A stretch of DNA of 64,000 bases, from the NCBI GenBank assembly GCA_047495785.1, contig JBLDXI010000029.1, positions 2,294,001 to 2,358,000 of the forward strand. The letters are read 5' to 3'. Source of the stretch: Lepidodermella squamata (taxonomy: Eukaryota > Animalia > Gastrotricha). The notes under the pieces were generated by a model that saw only the letters and a list, made by a program, of their open reading frames with translations, did not search any database and had not been told where the DNA came from. Positions 25,654 through 59,711 of this stretch are shown piece by piece (the stretch's first letter is position 1; each line of letters opens with the position of its first letter). The position numbers were made by a program, and so were the translations under genes.

Positions 25654-28600
25654 TCAATCGAATTCGTCATCGTCCATGCCATTTCCAACATTCCAACCCG
25701 GCGTATCGGGCTTTGCACTTGTGCCTGAAGAAATATTTACTAAATTTACTAAAAAAAGCTTTCGAAAATCTTACTCGGGAAGCAGAATCCGTAAATAACA
25801 TATCTGGCCGCTTTTTTGAAAACAATTTGCCACGTCACAAGAGCGTACGATTGCTTCAAAACAACAGGGATAGGCTATAGGTCAAAAGTTGGCATAATAA
25901 TGAGGTCAAAAATTGAAATTTGACCTACATCAAAGTTGATGAATGCGAAACTGGGTAATTTCAGGTAGAAATCGAGCTTGAAGTACATGCGATCGTTGCC
26001 ATGGTAGAAGTAGAAACAGCCCGATGGCATGACAGTCATCATATCGACGTAGTAATTGACATACATTGTCGCTAAAACACCAACTCCGAAATACTAAAAA
26101 AAAATAATTAAAATTTGAAAAAAATGAATAAAAATTATGAGCATACATCATTTTCCAACTCGGCATAAGCATCGGCGTTGAAAGCAGCGTACGGCTGAAA
26201 TCGAACGCCCATCGAGCCGTCGGGGCCGCAGAATGACGGCCAAAAGGTCAAGTTGACGCCGACATCGAAATCAGCGTTCATAATGAACGCGAAGCCTGAA
26301 AACACGATGCGAAATGCTGGCAATGTCGTGCCTATGCCGTACTGCCACTCCTCCTTCGTCCGGTTGCACGTGTACTGAATTTCGTTGATGTAATTTGTGT
26401 TGATAACGTCGAGTTTCACCTCGCCGCTGAACGCGCCTTTGAGTTGTTCGCGCGAGAATGAAATTGAGGCGATTTCGATGGCGAGTACCAACTGGGCACC
26501 GAGCCAAGTTTTGCCGTACAGACGGCCGTCACTTGCATTGCTTTGGCCTGAGAAAAATCCGGCTTTGAAACCAGCCGAACCCAATGTTCCGAAAGCGAAC
26601 GATGCACTATAAGAAAAACAGTGGAATATAAAAAATAATGACAATGAAATAAATCAAAATAAATTATTTAATTATTTAAATTAAATTAAAATATCTGAAG
26701 TCTAATAATTTCGCTCAAAAGGGATAACGCCAGATTTTTTGTGTCAAGGCGCTAAATTTTTTACACTGGGACATCAAATTTAGGGATGCATAATTTTTCA
26801 AAAAAATTTCAATTTCAATGTTTTCAACATTTTTGAAAATTTTCATTTTTTTCAAATTGATTCCAGTCCTGAAAATGCGAGGCCCATTTAAAATAAAATG
26901 AATTTTACTTGAATAGGCAGTGTTTTTTCTTCATGCCGAATATCAAGCCATCACGGTCGAATTGAGCAGCCAAGTTGTAGACACCAGGCGCAAAATACCG
27001 GCCAATATCCGAGTCCCATCGCTGGCAGTTCAACTCGGGCGTAAATTTCGGAGTCAACCCCCCAGCCCCGCCACCGCCAGTTAGGGCACTAAGGGCGCCA
27101 AGCTGCCGCTTCACGCGTCTTTGCTGGCGTTGTTCAGGATGTTCAGGGTCCGATTGCAGAAGGTTGCGAAGGCCGAGTTTCAGGTCTGCTTTTGATTTCA
27201 GCTCGAAGAATTCGCGCAATAAACCGGGTTTACACGAAAAATCGCCGCTCAGGTTGTCGTCACCGCCGTCTTTCAAGGTCCGGTTCAACGAGTTCCATAG
27301 ATAGGCGTCAAGTACTGTGAAATTATGCTTAGGCCACGTTCGTCTTGGCTTTATCATACCAGCTGAAAAAGGAAGATATATACATTTAATTGAAATTTTC
27401 AAATATTCCGAAACATATTCCGAAAAAAATCGGCCGGGCACAACTTTCCCAAAAATAAATTTTTTATTACCACGCCTAACCAAGCCACATCTCAGCGTTA
27501 CGTGTATGTTGCGTTATTGATGGGCAGTTTAAGAGTACCTAATACTTCAGTTTGCTGGCCGATATCGATTTCAATTATCGATTTTAGAAATCAGTGATTT
27601 TTCCGATATTAGAGCGTGACCCATACGCTGCGCAACCATTAGGCAATTTCGAACATTTTTCAAGGAAATTGAACTAATTTTTTGAGGTTAAGCCCACCGA
27701 GTTACCCTGGAACCTTTATCCACGGTTTTACCGAAGAAATTAAAAATGTAACTGGGAAAAATTTGAAAATCGTGATGGTAACTGGTTCGGAAATTTTCCG
27801 TTTTTACCTGAATCGAATTTCTTCGGAATTTTTTAATCCCATTCGCAAGAGATAGATAAGGTGTTTGATTACTATTTTTATGGCATTTTAGATTTTTCTA
27901 AGATTTTTCTAAAATTAAATATCCCTGGGTCGTAGCGCGCATTTCATACCAAGAAAGGAATAGTTCGAAATATCAAAAAATCGGGAAACCTAATTTAAGG
28001 AGCAGAAATAAAATAATAGAAATAGAAATAGAATAATAAAATAATAGAGCTCAGCTACTAGTGAATCTATTTCATCCGAGAAATTATAAGGAAATCAGGA
28101 AATTTTCCGAAAAAAATGAAGGGAAAAGTACCATCGCTTTGTCGCAGTCCGGTTTCAGGTAACGAAACCAATTGCTGAAGCAATTCACTCCTGGTATAGC
28201 AGCTGCTTTGCCTCATCACGACCAGCAACCCATTTTGAACCTGATCATCCTCCAAAACATGCCGCAAGGTGAGTAAAGACTCCGTCGCCAACTCCGGGTT
28301 CCAGCCATGGCAAGATCCAACAAGTTTCAGCACCACTCGAATCAGGCGACGTAGCACGTTTTCAGCCCTATTCAACATAGTTGGGACTATCACATTAGCC
28401 GCAGCGTCCAAAACAGCCCGGCGTTGTTCGGCCGGAGCTTGGCAATCGCGAATAAACGGTTCCAACTTAGCGATGAAAATGTTAATAACCACCCGATGAA
28501 CCCGACTGGTCGCAGTTTCTTTCGAAACCAGCAAGCTCAGATCCGTTAAAACGTGCATGTTCATAGCATTGGTCCAAGCTATTGGCCAGCTGTCTGTCCT

Positions 28601-44500: not shown

Positions 44501-45489
44501 ACTCAGTAATGACACGCAGAAAATTTTACAGGAAAATCTACCCAGCTTGGTCCAAGCTGACTCAAATTGGGATATGAATTGTGTCAATTTTCACCCGACT
44601 TTCAACAAGCTGAAATGGTGTCTTTTGAAAAAGATAAATGGCGCATGAATGGCGCACGTTAACTCGATTGAAAACTATGAATTTTTCGTAAAAAGCAAGA
44701 TCTTCAACTGTGGAGGTGAGTAAGGATTTATCTTTGCCTGCCTTCGCCCGCTTCAAAACCGGAAACGGTAAAGACGCTGTAGTCAAGGAGAGGCTTAAAT
44801 AAAACCACTATTATTACCGTAGAAATATTAAAAAAGCGACGTTTGGCTTATCTAAAATTACCGCTACAGTCAAATTTGGTCCCGCTAAAAGATATTCTTT
44901 TAATAAATTTTTCCATACTTTGTGTAATGCTCTCCGATGACTTCTTCCACCGCAACAGTGCAAGCCATTGCAGCTTCTTTGCCTAGCAACGCAGTCGAGG
45001 CTCCGAGGGCGAAACCTGCGACGTTCCAAATCGGAAGTAACACCGTCGGTTTGGCATTGTACTTTTTCATCAACTCTTCGAATTTCGATAGATGCTTCTC
45101 CTCTTGCTGCCACATTTCCTAATCAATCAGCCATTGAAATTTCCCTTTAATTATACCCGAATCGAAATACTCACGCGAATGACATGAGATACGGGCGAAT
45201 TTTGAAGCACAAAATGCTGCCCGGAGTAAATGCGATCCGCGCCAAATTCACCCGCGTGATCGACGCGGATGATTCGATCGACCAATGCCTCCTTCGTCAA
45301 ACCCTGAGACGCGCCTGCAGCCGGCTCTTCTTCCTCGAGCGGTTGATCCATCAGCAGTTCTTGAGGCAAAACCGCATCGAAACCGTCGTCTTTCTTCGCT
45401 TCATCAGCGAAAAGTTTCTGCGAAGTTGATAAATTTCGCGAGATTAAGCTGGATGGCCTAGCTTTTGACAGAATTCGGGCCAGCATCAT
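41580..45489 (-). CDS. COQ7: 5-demethoxyubiquinone hydroxylase COQ7/CLK-1
   Basis: Exons 45489-45175, 45118-44919, 41836-41785, 41726-41580 splice in frame: [62 protein letters not shown]. Mitochondrial presequence-like N-terminus. Confidence 0.96.
43290..44400 (+). mobile_element. Degenerate LTR-retrotransposon gag/protease relic in COQ7 intron 2 (limits approximate)
   Basis: [19 protein letters not shown] zinc knuckle at 44101-44145, followed by a disrupted D-S-(G)-A-T-like aspartic protease motif. Many stops. Confidence 0.6.
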
Positions 45490-46088: not shown

Positions 46089-48487
46089 TCATTTTTTCGC
46101 CTGCTTATGGTTGTCTTTGCGCGACTGAAAGAACGACACAGTTCGCAGGGCTTGTGATTGCGGGGCGATTCGCACGACGGTCTCGGCGCCCATCGAAAAG
46201 GTGTACTGGATACCACCGTCGATGACCAAACCACCATCCTGCATTCGACTTCGAATTCGCAGCTTTTGACAATAACCACGGGGTGCAGTTAACTTGAAAA
46301 CTTCTGCAAAAAAAAATAAAAATTCCACCTTAAATTTCAGCTTAATTGTGAAATGTGAGAAAATCTAGCTTAACATAAATTTTTATCGTTTATAAAATAA
46401 TCGTTTTTAATAAAAAATAAAAAACTCCACCTTAACTCTTTCATCAGCAGAATTATGAAAAAAATCCAGCTTAATAATTTTTAATTTTAATTTAAAATTA
46501 CCGTTAGTAATAGGGTCCCGGGAAGCGTAAGCCATGCGTTTGTCCTCTGGGTGAAAAATGAGCGCCGAGTTATAGGATTCAACAACGCGATTGACGAATT
46601 TTTGATCGGAAACAGGCAGCTGACCGCCTTGCCTCGTGTCTGCCGCAATTTCGTTCGCAAGTTGCAGCAGCGACTTGACGGTATCCGGATGCAGTGTTGT
46701 AATCGTGTGGTACCACGATGTAGAACCTGTTCCGGTTGATACGGTCAAGCCTGAGGATTTTTGCTTGAAGGACGGCTGGTCATCAATGGTCACTTCATAA
46801 TACGAGGCGCTGAAAACAAAAAAAATTATTGCATAATATATTTATGGGGAATTTTGAATAATTTACAGGGCATTGCTGTTTTCGCCGATGAAAACTTCGT
46901 TGAGCGCTAATGAGGGTAGAACGACGAATCCGGGCAGCTCGGGGTCAGGAGGTAGAGTCGAGACGGGGTATTCGAAAGACGGCCGGCCGTGGACGTGCAA
47001 ATCAGTCACGGTTACTGTTTCGCAGGCCGCAAGGGAAACTTCAATCCGCTGGCGATTCAGCCAGCGAAAATGGCCACTCTGGAGGCGATCGTAAACCTCC
47101 TAAAAATAGAAAAAAAGTTTAATCCGAAGCCCATCAGAGATAAAATACCTAAACAACATTAAATATCAAACAAGTTTTACATGTTCATAATCCAGCTTAA
47201 AACGAGAACCTTAAACTTTGCAGGTGAATAGCTTTGGGAAGGCGAATGATTAAAACAAAGGTTTCATCGCAAACGAAATTATCCGTCTTACAAGCTCTTC
47301 AAATTCGTAAAGCTTGAGGTAATTAAAGGGAAAACCAACTCTTTGAAAAAGCTCATTATCTGTGCAATATGACTGAAAGACTCCCCTCATCTCTACCTAA
47401 TCAAGGAATAAATTTTGATGAAATTTGGCGTGGGCATACCTGAAGCGTTGCTCGCTCCGTGATCGAAAGATAAAACAAAATCGGACGACTGGTTTAAGCA
47501 AGGAATCCACCTGAAATTCAGGTGCAAAATTGGGTAATTTTTAGAAAAAAATGCTGCTAAGAATAATTTTCAAATTTCTCAAACTCTTCTCAAAATTTGA
47601 CCCAAGATTAAATAACAAAATTCAAAATTATTTAAGCTATAAGCTTTATAAGAAAATGAGAGACCAAAATTAACCGCTAACCTTCATGCAAGAATGATCT
47701 AAATCGACCAAAATCAGGAAAAATTCGTAAAATTTTCCATAGCATAGATTGATCAGAAACAATCAACCCCATAATATTCAAGCTATTTTCCGAGTTGAAA
47801 TTGATTTTCAATTTTCGAACAACCTTGATCCTTTCAATGTTACCTAGCGCCCCAAGTTACAATACACCTCGAAAATCTTCAAGAAAATAAGTTTCTCACC
47901 TCGATATCCATATTAGGAAGACAGAGATGGCCTTGAGATCGCGTAGGGTCGGTATTAAAACCGATGACGGGAATTGAGTTATCTTTAACCCAACCAGCTG
48001 CTTGCAGGAAGGTGCCGTCGCCGCCCGCTGTCAACACGGCATCGACGTGTTTGAGCTTTTCGTGGTCGAAATCAGACCGATTGGTCACCTGCACATTTAC
48101 GCCACGCTTCTGGAAAAAACCGACCAGCCGATCCAGCTCCTTGTGATGCATTTTGTGGTGTTCCAGCAGTTTATTGTAATCACTGCCGAGGAAATTGACG
48201 TAGTTCTCGAAATCCTTCTCGCTCTGGCGATTCGACAGCATCTTTTCGAACTCGTAACGAGTCCGCTTATTGAATAGGACGACATTTTTGAACCGCAGCG
48301 GTTCGTTGATCGGGCGGTCGATTAGCGAGCGTTGTTGGCACGCATCCTTAGCAGCGGGTCCGTTCGCTGACGACCATGGTCGTAGGATGTGGTAGAAATT
48401 CTTAGCTGACCGCTTGATTCCGCAAGCAGTAACCAGCTTGGAGAGAATAATCTTTCGGTAGTTAGTCGAGGCGCAGTTGACAATCAT
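46089..48487 (-). CDS. NADK2: Mitochondrial NAD kinase 2
   Basis: KRTRYEFE, AGGDGTFL, GFNTDPTRSQGHLCL, ALNEVFIGE, KQKSSGLTVSTGTGSTSW, GLVIDGG. Four exons. Confidence 0.94.
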
Positions 48488-48899
48488 TGGATAAGACGTT
48501 ATCAACTCGTTTATCCCTTTTTCTTCGGCATTTTCAGCAAAACAATGTCAAAAGTTGTAGAATGGACGATTACAGCACCAGAGATTCACTATTATTAATA
48601 CTAATAAGCATAAATGTGCTTCAAAAGCGCCCTATATCAACGAGAAAAACAGCCTGTAAACACCGTGATACGACGACGAGATGCAAAAAACACGAGCGTT
48701 TCCGAGTACTACGCAGCGGCGTTTTTTTCTGCAGCGGACACACCGCCGCCACTAATAAATGAGAAGTACGCTGGGTCCGGGCCAGGAGAAGAACATGAAT
48801 GCACTCTGGATTCCGACTTCTAATTGCGATATCTGAAAAGAGAGAAGAAATTATTAGCCTCGCCAACATGAATTTTCGAAGCAAAAAAATAAGAATGAA

Positions 48900-48960
48900 T
48901 CAGTCGAAAGATGGTGTAAATTTTCTCACAGAATTCAAATATGTGCTTGTAATACATCAT
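48900..48960 (-). ncRNA. Box C/D snoRNA, predicted guide for the 28S Am equivalent to yeast Am807 (snR39/snR59; human U32/U51 site)
   Basis: C box ATGATGT; guide CACCATCTTTCG then A-CTGA. Complementary to conserved 28S CGAAAGAUGGUG; D+5 falls on the second A. Confidence 0.85.
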
Positions 48961-49118
48961 TTCTAGCGCAAAATTATGAAATATTAACAATAGCTTACCA
49001 TGCAAAATTTCGCGCGTAACCAAAGCCGTATACGATGGACAAAGAAACCTGAAAAATTAAGTAAGATTAAGAGTTGAATCGAAAATAACAATTCGTAAGA
49101 TTAGCTATTCATGCATAA

Positions 49119-49179
49119 TCAGTCGAAAGATGGTGTAAGTTTTCTCACGGAATTCAAATATGTGCTTGTTAAACATCAT
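49119..49179 (-). ncRNA. Box C/D snoRNA, duplicate of 48900-48960 (Am807-equivalent guide)
   Basis: Near-identical to the previous snoRNA, with the same boxes and guide. Confidence 0.85.
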
Positions 49180-49376
49180 TTCCTAACGCTAGCTAGTCAG
49201 TAATTCCTCTGTGACTTACATCGAGCGAAGTATCGATTTTGTAAAGTGGCAGCACGCCGGGCACGTCTCATTGATTTCCTATCAAAAAAAACCGATTAAT
49301 GAGCGGGAAAAAATATGAAAAAATCTATGTCCTTTAGCCTTGATCATAAGAACGAAAGTGAAATCGTCAAAAAGAT

Positions 49377-49433
49377 TCAGACGAACGAGACAGTTTCTAA
49401 TCATGCTTAGGCTGTAGGACAGGCGTATCGATA
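49377..49433 (-). ncRNA. Box C/D snoRNA, predicted guide for the 18S Am in ACGAACGAGAC (human Am1383-equivalent)
   Basis: GTCTCGTTCGT-CTGA is complementary to conserved 18S ACGAACGAGAC. Internal ATGATTA C' box; terminal C box degenerate. Confidence 0.65.
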
Positions 49434-49578
49434 AGTTTGCTTACCAATCAAGTGAATTTGCATTGTTCCCAGTCGATGAATCTCCAGCCATAACTTCAAC
49501 CTCCAACCTGTAACACAATAAACTCGATTAATACAAGCGAGCATTTCAGAACAATTCATGTAAATCATTCAAATATTT

Positions 49579-49639
49579 TCAGACTCGAAAGATGGTATAT
49601 AGAAAGATATCACGTGTTTCAAATTATTTTTGTCATCAG
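49579..49639 (-). ncRNA. Box C/D snoRNA, predicted guide for the 28S Gm equivalent to yeast Gm805 (snR39b/SNORD2-like)
   Basis: C box CTGATGA; ACCATCTTTCG-AGT-CTGA shifts D+5 onto the G of CGAAAG. Confidence 0.85.
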
Positions 49640-49802
49640 TAAACTTTTCTCGAAATTCTGATTCAATAAAAAAGCACAAACCTTTCAGTTGTCCATGTCA
49701 GCCTTTGACTTGCCACCGAACCCCTGAAAAAGACATCAAGAGAATTACAACCAAGTTAAAATAGTTGATAATATTGGCTATTTTTTGAAGGGCTATCGGC
49801 TA

Positions 49803-49863
49803 TCAGACTCGAAAGATGGTATTGAGAAAGATATCACGCGTTTCAAATTTTGTTTGTCATCAG
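49803..49863 (-). ncRNA. Box C/D snoRNA, duplicate Gm805-equivalent guide
   Basis: Near-identical to 49579-49639. Confidence 0.85.
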
Positions 49864-50047
49864 TTATAAGCCCATAAAACCATATCAGTGAACAGCGGAA
49901 AGGAATGAGGAGCTTACTTTTAAAACGCAGATGCGCATTGGCTGATCGACTGGAAAGGATTTGAAGCGAAAATACCTGGAACATAATAAGAATCGTTAAA
50001 CATATGGATGAACAACATCGTACAAAAATTGCATTCAATTTGAAGAG

Positions 50048-50108
50048 TCAGACGAAAGATGGTGAAAAACATCTCATGGAAATCGAAAATGGGTATGATA
50101 TGCATCAT
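50048..50108 (-). ncRNA. Box C/D snoRNA, third Am807-equivalent guide
   Basis: C box ATGATGC; 14-nt guide TTCACCATCTTTCG then T-CTGA, complementary to 28S CGAAAGAUGGUGAA. Confidence 0.82.
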
Positions 50109-50307
50109 GTCATAGAAGCAATCTTAAAATAAAAAATACTTACAATAATTCTTGCTGCTGCTCGCAATAAATGTTTGTTTCTAATGCTTCTCGTGGCATT
50201 TCAAAGTGAAGTTTGTTTCCAGGAGTGACCTGTATAAATATAAAGAGTCGATGTAAGTCGATGAACAGAGAAACAGATTAAAAGGGTGAAATCTGGTGAA
50301 ATAATAT

Positions 50308-50374
50308 TCAGACTAGGGCATGTTTGATTTATCTTCATTGGAACCTCGAAATTGGCCAAATCAACAATCATCAC
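50308..50374 (-). ncRNA. Box C/D snoRNA, target unassigned (triplicated family, copy 1)
   Basis: C box GTGATGA, D box CTGA, internal TGAAGA C'-like box; intronic. Confidence 0.8.
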
Positions 50375-50540
50375 TATCAAGAATCAACGAAAAATATGAA
50401 GTTATAATTTACCATTTCATCTCTGGGTGGCGCAGCTCTTCACACGGGGGTATCACGGCGAGTTATCTGTTGAGAATAAAAACATTACAAGATTAATTAT
50501 AGCTACACAAGAGAGAAGCCTTCCTACGGATACAACAAAA

Positions 50541-50609
50541 TCAGACTTGGGCATGTTTTGTTTTATCTTCAAAGGATCCCTCGAAATTGGCCAAATCAAC
50601 AATCATCAT
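50541..50609 (-). ncRNA. Box C/D snoRNA, target unassigned (copy 2)
   Basis: C box ATGATGA, D box CTGA; near-identical to copies 1 and 3. Confidence 0.8.
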
Positions 50610-50800
50610 TATGGAGTAATTGGTCAAGACTAAAATCAATAAAAGAGAACAGTTAGAACCTACCATTATCAATCATCTTCAAGCCATAGCTCATGGTTCA
50701 GCGTAATGCGTAATCACGAAGACATATCTGTCGGAAATAAAAACGAAGCTGGTTAATAACAGCAAATTAATAAAGAAGTATCTTTGCAGTTAAACCGAAA

Positions 50801-50869
50801 TCAGACTTGGGCATGTTTTGTTTTATCTTCAATGGCTCCCTCGAAATTGGCCAAATCAACAATCATCAT
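50801..50869 (-). ncRNA. Box C/D snoRNA, target unassigned (copy 3)
   Basis: C box ATGATGA, D box CTGA; near-identical to copy 2. Confidence 0.8.
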
Positions 50870-51379
50870 ATAAATAGCGGCATATTTACGAAAATAAGCT
50901 ACTAACTACGATTACTGTCAGTACATGCAGGCTTCAACCAAACTAACCTCTTCGAATTCCTGCGATGACAGCGCATAGACCAGCTCCAAATCAGCTTCAT
51001 ATCGCTTTAACCATAACGTCAAGGCATAGCGAAGAAGATCGGGAATCTTACGGTCGAAGTAGTAAGTAGCAAGAGAAAATCTGATTTAGATGCAACAATA
51101 GCTTGAATTCTGAACATTGATCTACTCTCTAAAACCAAGACCCAAGTGCCACGCGGCACGCGGTACGACACCTAAAAAACGTGCTTTCTGCACTTCCAGC
51201 CAAAAAAACATTCGCTAACAGCACTTAAAATGTGAAGGTCGTCCATTAATTTTAACGTAATTAGTCATTTAAGCAATATATTTATTATTTTATCTATTAT
51301 TTTATTTAAAAAATTCTCTTTTCAACCATAAGGTTTTGGCGCTAACATTTTTCCGGTTTTCAGCTTTCAGTGGTTAGCC

Positions 51380-51800
51380 TTTTTCTGCCTAAAATTAGGC
51401 AGAATTTTCCGCTATAGCTTTTTCTGCCTAAATGGTAAGTAGGCGCTTGAATCGCGTCAATCCCCACAAAATGCCTTTAAAATTGAATTTTCTAGTCTAT
51501 CTTGCAATAATAACTAACCTAAATGGCTTAATCCGTGAATAATTCATCATTGGCGCCCATAATAAGGCGGTTACACGTAACACGTAAAGCGTTTTACTTA
51601 GCCTGTCTTAGCGCGGCATCTTTAGTCATTATCTATCTATATTTGATTTATTTTTTATTATAATACGCTTTTTGACAAATAAATGGAGCAATACAATTAA
51701 AATGATCATTGGCATCGTTTCTGGGGCCTTCCGCTACATAGCGAAATTTTAGGCAGAAAAAGCTATAGCGGAAAATTCTGCCTAATTTTAGGCAGAAAAA
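51380..51800. mobile_element. MITE-like element with 53-bp perfect inverted repeats
   Basis: 51380-51432 is the exact reverse complement of 51748-51800. Confidence 0.75.
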
Positions 51801-52011
51801 ATTTCTCGCTTTCAGTTCCCCCGGTTGTTTCCAGTTTCGAAGAAGAACCGCATACTTGAAGACCCAAGGTGTCGCAGACTTTTAACTCTCATATTCACAT
51901 CTCATTTACACTGGCTTATTTCCACCTGATGTTTCCGACCTCAATTTAAGACTGTCAACCTAACTCCGCTTTTACTTTCTATCCATAGCACATCAATAGC
52001 GAAGTACATTT

Positions 52012-53064
52012 ATGAACGCGTTTCTTTCTAGCAACGTCCGTTCCTTGATTCAATCCGCTCGATTAGTCTCGATGGCTTCTTCAGCAAAGAGTTACAATGT
52101 CCTTGTTACGGCCGCTGGAATTCCCAAACCTGCCATCGAATTTTTGAAGGCAAAGAATTGTACCATTGACCAATGGCATCTGGAAACTGTGATGCCAACT
52201 GATGAGGTGAAAAAGCGCATCAAAGACGTTGATGCCGTTTATTGCACTCTCAACGATCAGATTTCCCGAGATGTTATTAGCGCAGCCAGTGATAAACTAA
52301 AGGTCATTTGCACCATGTCGGTAGGAGCTGATCATGTGGATAAGGCTGCTCTCAAGGAGCGGGGAATTCGGTTTGGATACACGCCCGATGTAGTTACTAA
52401 CGCTTCGGCAGAACTGATAACCTGTTTGATCCTGACTACGATGCGGAAAACCTTTCAAGGCGCACTGGCTGTGAGAAATGGCGAGTGGCCCGATGGATGG
52501 CGGCCTTTGTGGATGTGCGGTGACACGATCTGCGAATCAACACTTGGTTTTGTTGGATTTGGCCGAATTGGACAAGCTCTCGCTGCCCGACTGAAAGCAT
52601 TCAGCCCTGCTAAAATTCTTTATCATTGTCAAAATCGGAAGGCCAACCTTGAATCTGAGTTGGGTGTTACCTGGTGCGACAACTTGGACGGAATAATGCA
52701 ACAGTCTGACGTCGTGATTGTTTGCTGCGCTTTGGACGATTCAACTCGCCATTTAATGTCGAGGAGAACACTTGGTCTAATGAGAAAGGGCTCGTACTTT
52801 ATTAATGCAAGTCGCGGTGGGGTTGTGGACCAAGATGCTTTGATTGAACTGCTGCGGCAAGGTCACTTTGCAGGCGTAGGGCTTGATGTCACGACTCCTG
52901 AACCTTTACCCGCTTCTAGCGAATTGCTTAAATTTCCCGAATGTACTGTTTTCCCCCACATGGCTTCATCCTGCATTAAAACGCGTGAAAGAATGGCTGA
53001 CTTGGTTGTTCGAAACATTTGGGCCGCTTTGCAGGGCGAGCCCATGCCTGCCGAATGGAAATAA
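52012..53064 (+). CDS. GRHPR: Glyoxylate/hydroxypyruvate reductase (D-2-hydroxyacid dehydrogenase), copy 1, intronless
   Basis: TMSVGADHVD, GYTPDVVT, W.PLWMCG, GFGRIG, FINASRGGVVDQ, GLDVTTPEPL, PH catalytic motif. Confidence 0.93.
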   Translation: MNAFLSSNVRSLIQSARLVSMASSAKSYNVLVTAAGIPKPAIEFLKAKNCTIDQWHLETVMPTDEVKKRIKDVDAVYCTLNDQISRDVISAASDKLKVICTMSVGADHVDKAALKERGIRFGYTPDVVTNASAELITCLILTTMRKTFQGALAVRNGEWPDGWRPLWMCGDTICESTLGFVGFGRIGQALAARLKAFSPAKILYHCQNRKANLESELGVTWCDNLDGIMQQSDVVIVCCALDDSTRHLMSRRTLGLMRKGSYFINASRGGVVDQDALIELLRQGHFAGVGLDVTTPEPLPASSELLKFPECTVFPHMASSCIKTRERMADLVVRNIWAALQGEPMPAEWK

Positions 53065-53222
53065 CATTATAACGGTGCTCTACTTACATGACACTGAAAA
53101 CTACCGCTGCTTCCTTGTTGCATATTTATGATGATATATCACCTGCCATTTGCTTGCTATTATACCTACCAAAGAGCTATTTTTCTTCAATTCCGTTGAT
53201 GTTTTATAGGTTTTATTTGAAC

Positions 53223-54206
53223 ATGTCTGATAAACTCAGGGTATTAATAACGGCTCATGCTCTTCCAAACGTGGCTTTTGAGCTGCTGAACAACCACAAT
53301 TTTGTGATTGACCAATGGAATGAAGAGACCGTCATGCCCAAGGAGGAAATTTTAGCCAGGTCGAAGGACGTGGATGCAATTATTTGCACTGTCGTGGATC
53401 AAATCACTAAAGAAATCGTCGAAAACGCTAGCCGACTTAAAGTTATTAGCACATTTTCTGTAGGGACTGATCATATAGATAAATTGGCTCTTAAGCAACG
53501 AGGAATCCGTTTAGGCCACACTCCAGATGTTTTGACGGATTCAGTCGCTGACTTGATAATTTGTTTAGTTCTGGCTAGTACGCGTCGAATTTTCGAAGCT
53601 GCCCAAGCTGTGAAAAACGGAGAGTGGGACGACAAATGGCGGCCATTTTGGTTAACAGGAAAATCTATGACAAGCTCAAGCTTTGGCCTGATAGGTCTTG
53701 GCAGAATCGGTCAAGCAGTTGCTCGTCGCTTGATACCTTTCAAACCCTCTAAAATCAAATACCATTGCAGAAGCCCAAAATTAGATTTAGAAGAGGACCT
53801 TGGCGTCATGTTCACGAAGAATATGGACGATTTATTAAAGGAATCAGATGTCGTTATTGTTTGTTGCTCTTTGAATGATTCAACGCGACAATTATTGAGC
53901 AAGGATAAACTTGGATTAATGAAGAAAGGGTCGTATCTAATCAATGCTAGTCGAGGTGATGTATTTGACCAAGACGGGCTGGTTGAACTATTGCAACAGG
54001 GCCATTTCGCCGGAGTAGCGTTGGACGTGTGTTCACCGGAACCGCTACCAGCGAATCACGAGCTGTTGAATTTTAAAGAGGTGATCGTCCTTCCTCACGT
54101 GGGGGCAGCTGTGAACGAAACACGAACTAAAATGGCAGAGTTGACAGTTAACAATGTCATTGCTGCTTTGGAAGGCCGTGAAATGCCTGCGGAATACACT
54201 CTATAG
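53223..54206 (+). CDS. GRHPR: Glyoxylate/hydroxypyruvate reductase, copy 2, intronless
   Basis: Likely start MSDKLRVLIT at 53223. SVGTDHID, GLGRIG, INASRG, LDVCSPEPL, LPHVGAA. Confidence 0.92.
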   Translation: MSDKLRVLITAHALPNVAFELLNNHNFVIDQWNEETVMPKEEILARSKDVDAIICTVVDQITKEIVENASRLKVISTFSVGTDHIDKLALKQRGIRLGHTPDVLTDSVADLIICLVLASTRRIFEAAQAVKNGEWDDKWRPFWLTGKSMTSSSFGLIGLGRIGQAVARRLIPFKPSKIKYHCRSPKLDLEEDLGVMFTKNMDDLLKESDVVIVCCSLNDSTRQLLSKDKLGLMKKGSYLINASRGDVFDQDGLVELLQQGHFAGVALDVCSPEPLPANHELLNFKEVIVLPHVGAAVNETRTKMAELTVNNVIAALEGREMPAEYTL

Positions 54207-57300: not shown

Positions 57301-59711
57301 TAATATTTTCACTCCGAAAAAATGTATGCGAGCATCGTGATGTATCCGAAAATTGACAAATTCTTTTGCATCGTCAATTATCTCTACAAAGCAAAAAACC
57401 CAACGCCGAATTGGGTGAGGGGGTGGGGGGCGAAAGTGGAGTACGAAAGGTGTTCTGACGCCGCCAGGGATCTGAGACCTTGCTTGCTCGCTGCTCAGCA
57501 GTTCCGAAGTGGTTATCAGCCAGGTCTGATTTTATTCATCCAAATTCAAATCAGTTTCACGTGAGGAAACATTTAACAATAACAATTCTTGGAATCAGGA
57601 ATAAGAATACTAAGGGCAAGTTTTGCCACTTACATGTATCTTCAATTTGTCAGCAGCCAAGCAAAACTCGCTCATCGCAAGTTTTGTGGTGAGGGCCTCA
57701 GGAGCCACGAACGTCGGGTTCGATACCATATTAGCGAGGACAAGCTGGTGCAGCACAGCGTCGTTTATAGGCGATAGGCTCTTAACCACGGCATAGGATT
57801 GAACCTGAGCCGTGACTCCGACACTCATCGTATACTGCACGGTAGCTGACGTGGGCGCTTTAAATCCTTGAAGGTCGTAGACTTGTTGCGTCGGGGCACA
57901 GATCGCTTGGCCCACTAATCTGATGGGCAGTGCAGCATTTGAAGGAACCTGATACGTGTAAACACGTAAAAAACAGAGTTGTCCATGTTGTTCGAGATGA
58001 TGTCCATGTTTTTCGAGGCTTTCCTGAATGGCTTTGAGTCTCTTGTCCAAAATAAGTCAGTAACAGACAGTAAAAAAGCTGTAACAGCGCTTCCCGTTTG
58101 CAGCTTGACGATCAGCTTGAGTGGATTATTCGCGATAGTAAACGTTTTTACCCAATGCCGGGCGAGAGTAGTTAATTTCTTGCTTGAGTACGCTTATATT
58201 GACACGCTGCGGGAACACTTTGCGAGGGAGATTGTTCCATTCGTCGATCAGTTGCAGAAGGCGAGAGTAGTTACGAGTTAGAGTTGGAACTGGTGACGAG
58301 TTGCAAAGCCCTCGTATTTGCAAAGCTTCGCTCCGCTTTTCCGCATTTTGCAGATGTAATACACTGTAAAGCCCGAATTTCGAGGATGCGGGTGAGTTGA
58401 ATCTACCCACAAATCAGGATACTTCGTCCGTATTTACTGCTTGGCGGCGGCGAGAGATAACCCGAGTTGTAAGGATTCAAATATATCGAATTCATCGCTT
58501 GGCAGCGACAAAGGACGGTCATCTTCTTCCTCTAATTCTGGGTTAACGGCGTAAGCATCATCGTTCGTACTCAAAAACAGCGTCACGATTAAAATAAATT
58601 TTGCTAGTGTTAATTCCGCTATTAAAAATCAAGGAATGATATCGAATGGTTCCACAGGCCGGCTTGTTCTGTTTTGCCAGAGGCTGCCACTTTTTAATGC
58701 TACGCAATTACTAATATTCGGATGATTTAAAAACATTTTCGGATAAAATTCGCGTTTTGATTTGAAAAAAAAATATTTCGGATGGCTCGCAGATATTTTT
58801 TTATACCATATTTGGAGGTTAGATATGCAGCCCACAAATGCTTGGATCCCCATAGATTTTACCTATCCATCTCACTGGATTAGGATAATATTTTAAAGCA
58901 CAAAAAATGAATGAAAAATTCAAAATTTATTTTGCAATTGAAAGGTGACATGCCGGAAATTGTCGAAGATATCGACAAAGAAGGAGGTTTGTTTCATATC
59001 GAATCATTAGGCTTTGTAATTTGTCAAAAAACTACGTTATGTCTCGTTTAAATCTAGTTTTAACTTCATTTGTTCATTAGAATTTCTTTCAAATTTGAAT
59101 ATTATTTCTAAAATTCTATTTTTCATGTAGATTTTCCGAATTCTCGATGGTCTTTGGCGCCGGAAATGACCAGTCCAGACCTAATCGGAGGCCGACCTTC
59201 GCCGACAAACAGCGCAAGGCCCGCCAGTACGAACTCGGGCGCGTCCACTGAAGGCGTTGTCCTGAGGAAACGCCCAAATCGCGGCGTCGATTCCTCCGAT
59301 CCGCAGTCATCCAGCCGGACAGATTCGCCGGTTGGCCAGCAGGAAATCAGGCTAACTCGTCGCCACACAGCTACGTCAATGGCGGCGGCTCGAAGTTCGC
59401 CGACAATGCCGCCTTACCCGCAAGAAAGAAGGCCTAGGAACAATAGTAGAACTCCGAAAAAACAACCGAAAAGCTCATTGCCGCCAGCTGAAAACATCAC
59501 CTCAAATGATAATAATAATAATAATGATAATGCCACACCGTTAGATTCTCATATAATCGAAATTCCTGTAATAATCGATGAACCGATTAGCGAAGACGGG
59601 AAGAAAGTTGATGTTGTTATTGAACAAGCTCAAGTTGAAACTGAAGTTGAAAAAATAGACCAACCGATCAGCACTGCCGTTGATGATCTGGTTGCGACCG
59701 GCAGCTCATGA
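54312..59711 (+). CDS. KMT5B: Histone H4K20 methyltransferase SUV4-20
   Basis: ELCRIDDAASSLIVDPYL.FRTHKM, GFEIRPCYRYSGE, NDFSV, LWLGPASYVNHDC, EITIYYGDGFFG, CECETCER, YTLRE. Exons 54312-54808, 56414-56958, 59131-59711 join in frame. Confidence 0.93.
55838..56120. mobile_element. MITE-like inverted repeat in SUV4-20 intron 1
   Basis: ~64-bp near-perfect inverted arms at 55838-55901 and 56057-56120. Confidence 0.65.
58126..58330 (-). mobile_element. 3' fragment of a non-LTR retrotransposon (LINE) ORF2
   Basis: IDEWNNLPRKVF...SVLKQEIN matches the WNxLP C-terminal motif of L2/CR1-type ORF2. Confidence 0.55.

Follow-up and report, generated by a model that had tools for sequence, protein, structure and literature searches.

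The stretch analysed here, a window of 64,000 nucleotides (nt) from contig JBLDXI010000029.1 of the gastrotrich Lepidodermella squamata, very probably carries on its minus strand, from about 51.08 to about 48.6 kb, a dedicated, spliced, non-protein-coding host gene, of the Uhg/GAS5 type, for small nucleolar RNAs (snoRNAs) of the box C/D class. Between 48600 and 51080, the minus strand resolves into ten exons and nine GT..AG introns of 166-220 nt with pyrimidine-rich acceptors. The internal exons measure 42-86 nt, and box C/D-like units are found in 9/9 introns, one in each, which is the arrangement expected of a host gene with one snoRNA per intron. Tiny exons alternating with C/D-bearing introns on this strand had been proposed in an initial annotation made from the sequence alone, and this is what we found. 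The finding is real, and the initial annotation read the locus well except for the unit in intron 7, which is re-delimited below. The units are numbered by intron (Table 1); snoRNAs 1-3 are referred to as family A, snoRNAs 5 and 6 as family C, and snoRNAs 8 and 9 as family D.

The locus is contained in two public runs, one of which (X2) shows continuous coverage, like genomic DNA, while the other (X1) is cDNA-like. In X1, depth is restricted to exons and is zero or near zero in the intron bins of eight of the nine snoRNAs, the exception being the 5' part of intron 7, which is covered by a single retained-intron contig. The X1 contigs jump introns 1-6 and 9 exactly, at plus-strand CT..AC that correspond to minus-strand GT..AG, and one X1 contig reaches a SMART-type adapter. 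For intron 7, a loose end at 49285 bears the final bases of exon 7, matching the predicted junction of exons 7 and 8. The spliced host proposed in the initial annotation is supported by seven exact GT..AG joints and one junction loose end. An X1 contig at 49383-49469 (minus strand) keeps 62 nt from the start of intron 7, breaks off within snoRNA 7 just 5' of the D' box and then continues into adapter; it could represent a retained-intron intermediate, a processing intermediate or a chimera of the library.

The exons are apparently non-coding. Each of the three reading frames is interrupted by stops in exons 2, 3 and 10, and the longest open reading frame (ORF) in the modelled exon order is 87 amino acids (aa) long, starting from the exon 8/9 boundary after many upstream ATGs; its length was equalled or exceeded in 6% of shuffles. 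No Pfam match was found for the exon 10 frame. Together, the splice joints, the lack of an ORF above chance and the lack of a Pfam match support the earlier suggestion that this is a dedicated non-coding host of the UHG type.

All units other than unit 7 (8/9) possess a UGAUGN C box and a CUGA D box. The length from C to D is 69, 69 and 67 nt in units 1-3, respectively, and 61 nt in each of the remaining six. The strict pattern RTGATGN-N46-60-CTGA was found six times in the 2.5-kb locus (0.04 expected) versus two occurrences when both strands elsewhere (125 kb) are counted, indicating that this motif pair is enriched approximately 150-fold at the locus over the rest of the window. C/D-pattern matches at 28219 (minus strand) and 1612 (plus strand), as well as a guide-like 11-mer at 57908, were rejected, as they look like chance occurrences in coding-like sequence.

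The position of the units within their introns is highly regular. Between the D-box end and the intron end lie 73, 74, 78, 72, 79, 71, 70 and 67 nt in eight units, matching the range of about 67-79 nt from the 3' splice site that had been noted for eight D boxes, and 65 nt in unit 7. In eight of the nine introns, a branch-like YTAAY motif lies 17-32 nt upstream of the acceptor, and in all eight the D box ends 45-51 nt upstream of the A of this motif; intron 3 has CTTAC, not YTAAY, at a similar position. Judged by its motif, YTAAY is a candidate branch point. In human introns, box C/D snoRNAs are preferentially placed 50 nt upstream of the branch point; snoRNP assembly there is splicing-coupled, except when long external stems free it from this dependence (PMC5519232). 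In the present locus, terminal stems better than those of shuffled flanks (4-5 bp, external) occur in units 5 and 7 only, the other seven units having none above that level; the earlier statement that obvious terminal stems are lacking thus applies to seven of the nine units and fails for these two. The D boxes are spaced as is known to promote splicing-coupled assembly, which agrees with terminal stems being weak or missing in most units.

To define guide targets, we searched 116 eukaryotic (non-insect) ribosomal DNA (rDNA) loci, which were fetched from metagenomes by matching a segment of the large subunit (LSU) and none of which is from Lepidodermella squamata. A target was accepted when at least 10 nt of complementarity abutted box D or D', the target being the base opposite the fifth base upstream of the box. 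Such guides against conserved LSU or small subunit (SSU) segments were found in units 4-9 and not in units 1-3. In all five units 4, 5, 6, 8 and 9, box D is adjoined by ACCATCTTTCG. This guide can pair with the eukaryotic LSU rRNA segment CCGAAAGATGGTG in two registers, offset by two bases. The base five positions upstream of box D faces, for units 4, 8 and 9, the second A in CCGAAAG and, for units 5 and 6, the G located two bases upstream of this A. In yeast, snR39 and snR59 guide Am807, and snR39b guides Gm805 (PMC2806949). By guide complementarity, the two registers seen here are predicted to address the same pair of sites. In this scheme, snoRNAs 4, 8 and 9 would direct 2'-O-methylation of the LSU A equivalent to yeast Am807 and fly Am982, and snoRNAs 5 and 6 would direct methylation of the LSU G two bases upstream, a site of the Gm805 type.

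Permissive Rfam searches yielded sub-threshold but consistent matches to snoMe28S-Am982, snoZ196, snR39 and SNORD59. Units 8 and 9 match snoMe28S-Am982 with 30.5 and 28.5 bits (gathering score 49), unit 4 matches snoZ196/R39/R59 with 30.3 bits (gathering score of snoZ196, 55), and the match to SNORD59 reaches 21.4 bits (gathering score 45). Units 5 and 6 match the Tetrahymena snoRNA TtnuCD19, which has the same guide. Because the guide and the boxes account for most of the similarity, the snoRNAs of this locus are better regarded as functional analogues or distant homologues than as filed members of these families. The D' guide of snoRNA 4 has a possible LSU target, AAATGGGTAAG, which lies about 250 nt 3' of the LSU segment used for fetching, was seen in 14 loci and involves one mismatch; it is taken as a lead only. 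A low-complexity match of the D' element of snoRNA 5 to the SSU was rejected because it is absent from the paralogue snoRNA 6.

In intron 7, the unit was mis-delimited in the initial annotation. The CTGA at 49380-49377, which had been taken as its D box, is the D' box; with a unit ending there, the box-to-box span of just 27 nt would be too small. As re-delimited, snoRNA 7 consists, in order, of the C box AUGAUUA (from 49404), the D' box CUGA (49380-49377), the C' box UGACGA and the D box AUGA (to 49344), giving 61 nt from C to D as in the neighbouring units. Its stem is a perfect 5-bp helix (49413-49409 with 49340-49336), better than 99% of shuffled flanks. Immediately 5' of CTGA lies GTCTCGTTCGT (11 nt), with an SSU target in 24 rDNA loci, and immediately 5' of ATGA lies ACTTTCGTTCTT (12 nt), with an SSU target in 13 rDNA loci; both targets fall within the SSU rRNA match of a single rDNA locus, L035. 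The second of these guides corresponds to that of SNORD59, register included (21.4 bits; E 0.021 on a short stretch). As a control, 11-mers complementary to conserved rRNA were counted over the whole window, amounting to 0.7 runs per kb of strand, almost none of which is followed by a box. Against this background, two box-abutting complements in one 166-nt intron are far beyond chance. Two 18S sites are the predicted methylation targets of snoRNA 7: one is the site of SNORD59, the other an A within the conserved segment ACGAACGAGAC. A standard k-turn pairs base 6 of the C box with base 1 of the D box, usually as G-C. With UGAUUA and AUGA as its boxes, snoRNA 7 appears to have replaced this G-C by U-A, which we read as a compensated change.

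The sequences of the snoRNAs are constrained. Paralogous snoRNAs are 88-97% identical and are spaced 219-260 nt apart, with the intron flanks and most exons at shuffle level. A residual similarity is kept between exons 2 and 3, supporting the duplication of whole intron-exon units. The highly identical families, their regular spacing and the similarity of these two exons are all in line with the growth by local intron-exon duplication that had been suggested earlier. Set against the window, runs X1 and X2 have 35 listed single-base differences, of which the snoRNAs (571 nt) contain 1, located at a snoRNA edge, the rest of the introns (1068 nt) 22 and the exons (841 nt) 12. The differences cluster, and the counts are taken as suggesting that the exons are under weaker constraint than the snoRNAs of the introns. 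Around snoRNA 4, X2 differs from the window at 11 positions in 49972-50042 and at 7 positions in 50125-50204, and at none inside the snoRNA; this variant is either a second haplotype or a close paralogue. X1 contains contigs of both exon 4 variants.

Based on these data, we propose that RNA polymerase II transcribes the host gene and that splicing takes out the nine introns, which would then be debranched and trimmed by exonucleases to one box C/D small nucleolar ribonucleoprotein (snoRNP) core each. The placement of the snoRNAs 65-79 nt from the 3' splice site and about 45-51 nt from YTAAY would promote splicing-coupled snoRNP assembly. We infer that mature snoRNAs accumulate from these introns and that they direct the methylations predicted above. 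The exonic RNA is probably a by-product, and the array has grown via tandem duplication of intron-exon units.

Several results weigh against a spliced host gene with nine working guides. In the whole window, no Rfam family was matched at gathering thresholds, which might be expected if the motifs and splice-like sites had arisen by chance in intergenic DNA holding no gene. We regard this explanation as having practically no chance of being right, since it is contradicted by the exact GT..AG joints in RNA-derived contigs, by the motif enrichment and by the conserved guides. Among the X1 contigs, intron 8 has no joint; both flanking exons are covered and the intron is uncovered, from which we infer that it is spliced as well. 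Other adverse points concern the guides. When G-U pairs and one mismatch were allowed, the family A guides still had no target in the 116 rDNA loci, and the D' guides of families C and D had no recurrent target there. Family C carries an A-C mismatch at guide position 3, two bases from the predicted target. In addition, the D guide of snoRNA 3 differs from those of copies 1 and 2 one position away from the predicted target base, and family A gives only weak and inconsistent matches in Rfam. It may be asked whether the host is real but several of its copies have lost their guide function and are decaying duplicates, the candidates being family A, notably snoRNA 3, and family C with its mismatch. 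We consider this rather unlikely, as the C and D boxes are intact and the position in the intron is the same in all copies, the C, C' and D boxes of family A are well formed, and all three of its copies share one D' guide sequence despite randomised intron flanks. Moreover, the target search covered rDNA loci from metagenomes; as these loci are not from this animal, the blank result for family A does not make its RNAs orphans. With similarly low confidence, we suggest that family A could be a lineage-specific C/D snoRNA directed at a lineage-specific rRNA expansion segment, a small nuclear RNA (snRNA) or another RNA and, separately, that snoRNA 7 could be a natural compensated C/D pair (UGAUUA with AUGA) in a working double guide.

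The remaining adverse points lie at the ends of the transcript, both of which are placed approximately, as contigs cannot show RNA ends. Upstream, the X1 contigs extend to 51029. The pyrimidine tract TTTTCTCTT, which the initial annotation associated with a TOP start, is present at 51079-51071, and a further candidate tract for a TOP/TCT start, TCTTCTTC, is found at 51038-51031, both beyond the reach of the contigs. No canonical E-box, DRE, TATA or strict TCT motif was found near the start, and the Myc E-box CACGTG is absent from 51030-52011. Downstream, exon 10 contains no AATAAA (only an AATAAT occurs, at 48596), and this last exon abuts the start of an NAD kinase-like gene (PF01513; ORF 47879-48505) located directly downstream on the same strand, making read-through possible. 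It might be that the NAD kinase-like gene has a long alternative 5' leader formed by the ten exons, in which case the snoRNAs would reside in 5' untranslated region (5'-UTR) introns of a protein-coding host. The shared strand, the extension of exon 10 to about 48600 with the neighbouring contig running from 48599, and the lack of a canonical poly(A) signal in exon 10 would suit such a leader. Nevertheless, we find it improbable. X1 depth is low (about 15) up to about 48600 and steps about 16-fold to 251 at 48599, where the separate deep contig ends; this step speaks for separate host and kinase transcripts and suggests an independent start of the kinase gene. In addition, no joint connects the host exons with the kinase exons, and the leader would reach about 840 nt and contain numerous upstream ATGs and stops. 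We therefore favour a dedicated host gene over a kinase leader.

This host gene shows every feature of the Uhg/GAS5 type that could be examined. The Uhg genes of flies have no ORF and up to 16 introns with one snoRNA per intron (PMC4430873). Like Drosophila Uhg1-5, 7 and 8, the locus described here has no recognisable ORF, many short exons and duplicated C/D guides (PMC4430873), and, as in the fly, it includes guides of the Me28S-Am982 type (similar to Rfam RF00535). However, the similarity is distant, at 30 bits against a gathering score of 49, and no orthologue is recognisable by sequence. Mammalian UHG and GAS5 are genes of the same kind, with pyrimidine-tract starts (PMC6954239). Mammalian GAS5 and UHG (SNHG1) share with this locus that they are spliced and non-coding, that their introns carry one C/D snoRNA apiece and that the exons are under little constraint; in both cases the snoRNA lies about 70-80 nt from the 3' splice site and about 50 nt from the branch point (PMC5519232, PMC6954239), the branch point here being the predicted one. 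Different from the mammalian GAS5/UHG introns, those of the present gene are far shorter (166-220 nt).

At the level of individual snoRNAs, the closest parallels are Rfam clan CL00054, which comprises yeast snR39/snR59/snR39b, plant snoZ196/R39/R59 and fly snoMe28S-Am982, and SNORD59 (RF00273). The clan and the locus share the guide core ACCAUCUUUCG right before box D and the two registers, whose A and G stand two positions apart, in the manner of Am807/Gm805 (PMC2806949). They differ in that the scores at the locus are under the Rfam gathering thresholds, the D' halves are different and family C has one mismatch near the target. With SNORD59, snoRNA 7 shares ACUUUCGUUCUU right before a box, the register of the SNORD59 consensus and an SSU target. 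In snoRNA 7, however, this guide precedes the terminal D box instead of D', the boxes are UGAUUA/AUGA and not UGAUGA/CUGA, a second 18S guide is carried, and the match scores 21 bits (gathering score 45).

With this locus, the genome annotation gains one well-supported non-coding gene and nine guide RNAs, six of them with predicted methylation targets. The mammalian distance of about 50 nt from snoRNA to branch point is kept very tightly here (45-51 nt to the predicted branch point). This layout has been well documented before, in the Uhg genes of flies and the GAS5/UHG genes of mammals, and the gene type, the growth by duplication and the positional rule are all textbook knowledge, so that no concept is changed; the finding is sound but ordinary.

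Table 1. Exons and introns of the snoRNA host gene in window coordinates, with the RNA evidence and the snoRNA contained in each intron (C-to-D positions).
Feature	Position	Strand	RNA evidence	snoRNA and remarks
Exon 1	50948..51079	-	RNA contigs up to 51029	5' end approximate
Intron 1, 220 nt	50728..50947	-	splice joint	snoRNA 1 (family A), 50869-50801
Intron 2, 197 nt	50467..50663	-	splice joint	snoRNA 2 (family A), 50609-50541
Intron 3, 183 nt	50230..50412	-	splice joint	snoRNA 3 (family A), 50374-50308
Intron 4, 168 nt	49976..50143	-	splice joint	snoRNA 4, 50108-50048; snoZ196/snR39-like, predicted Am807/Am982 register
Intron 5, 194 nt	49724..49917	-	splice joint	snoRNA 5, 49863-49803; predicted Gm805-type register, 4-bp external stem
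Intron 6, 174 nt	49508..49681	-	splice joint	snoRNA 6, 49639-49579; paralogue of snoRNA 5
Intron 7, 166 nt	49279..49444	-	loose end at 49285	snoRNA 7, predicted double 18S guide
Intron 8, 171 nt	49049..49219	-	flanking exons covered, intron not	snoRNA 8 (family D), 49179-49119
Intron 9, 166 nt	48833..48998	-	splice joint	snoRNA 9 (family D), 48960-48900
Exon 10 (last exon)	48600..48832	-		3' end approximate

Further features were noted in the neighbourhood of the host gene. The NAD kinase-like gene appears to start at about 48599, and a 6-codon upstream ORF (ATG at about 48531) precedes its main ORF. On the plus strand, 52012-53064 and 53088-54206 encode tandem paralogues of D-isomer-specific 2-hydroxyacid dehydrogenases (glyoxylate/hydroxypyruvate reductase-like); this pair is divergent from the host gene, with which it shares about 0.9 kb of upstream DNA. 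At 44900-45115 on the minus strand, an ORF fragment was judged by eye to resemble part of a COQ7-type ubiquinone biosynthesis protein.

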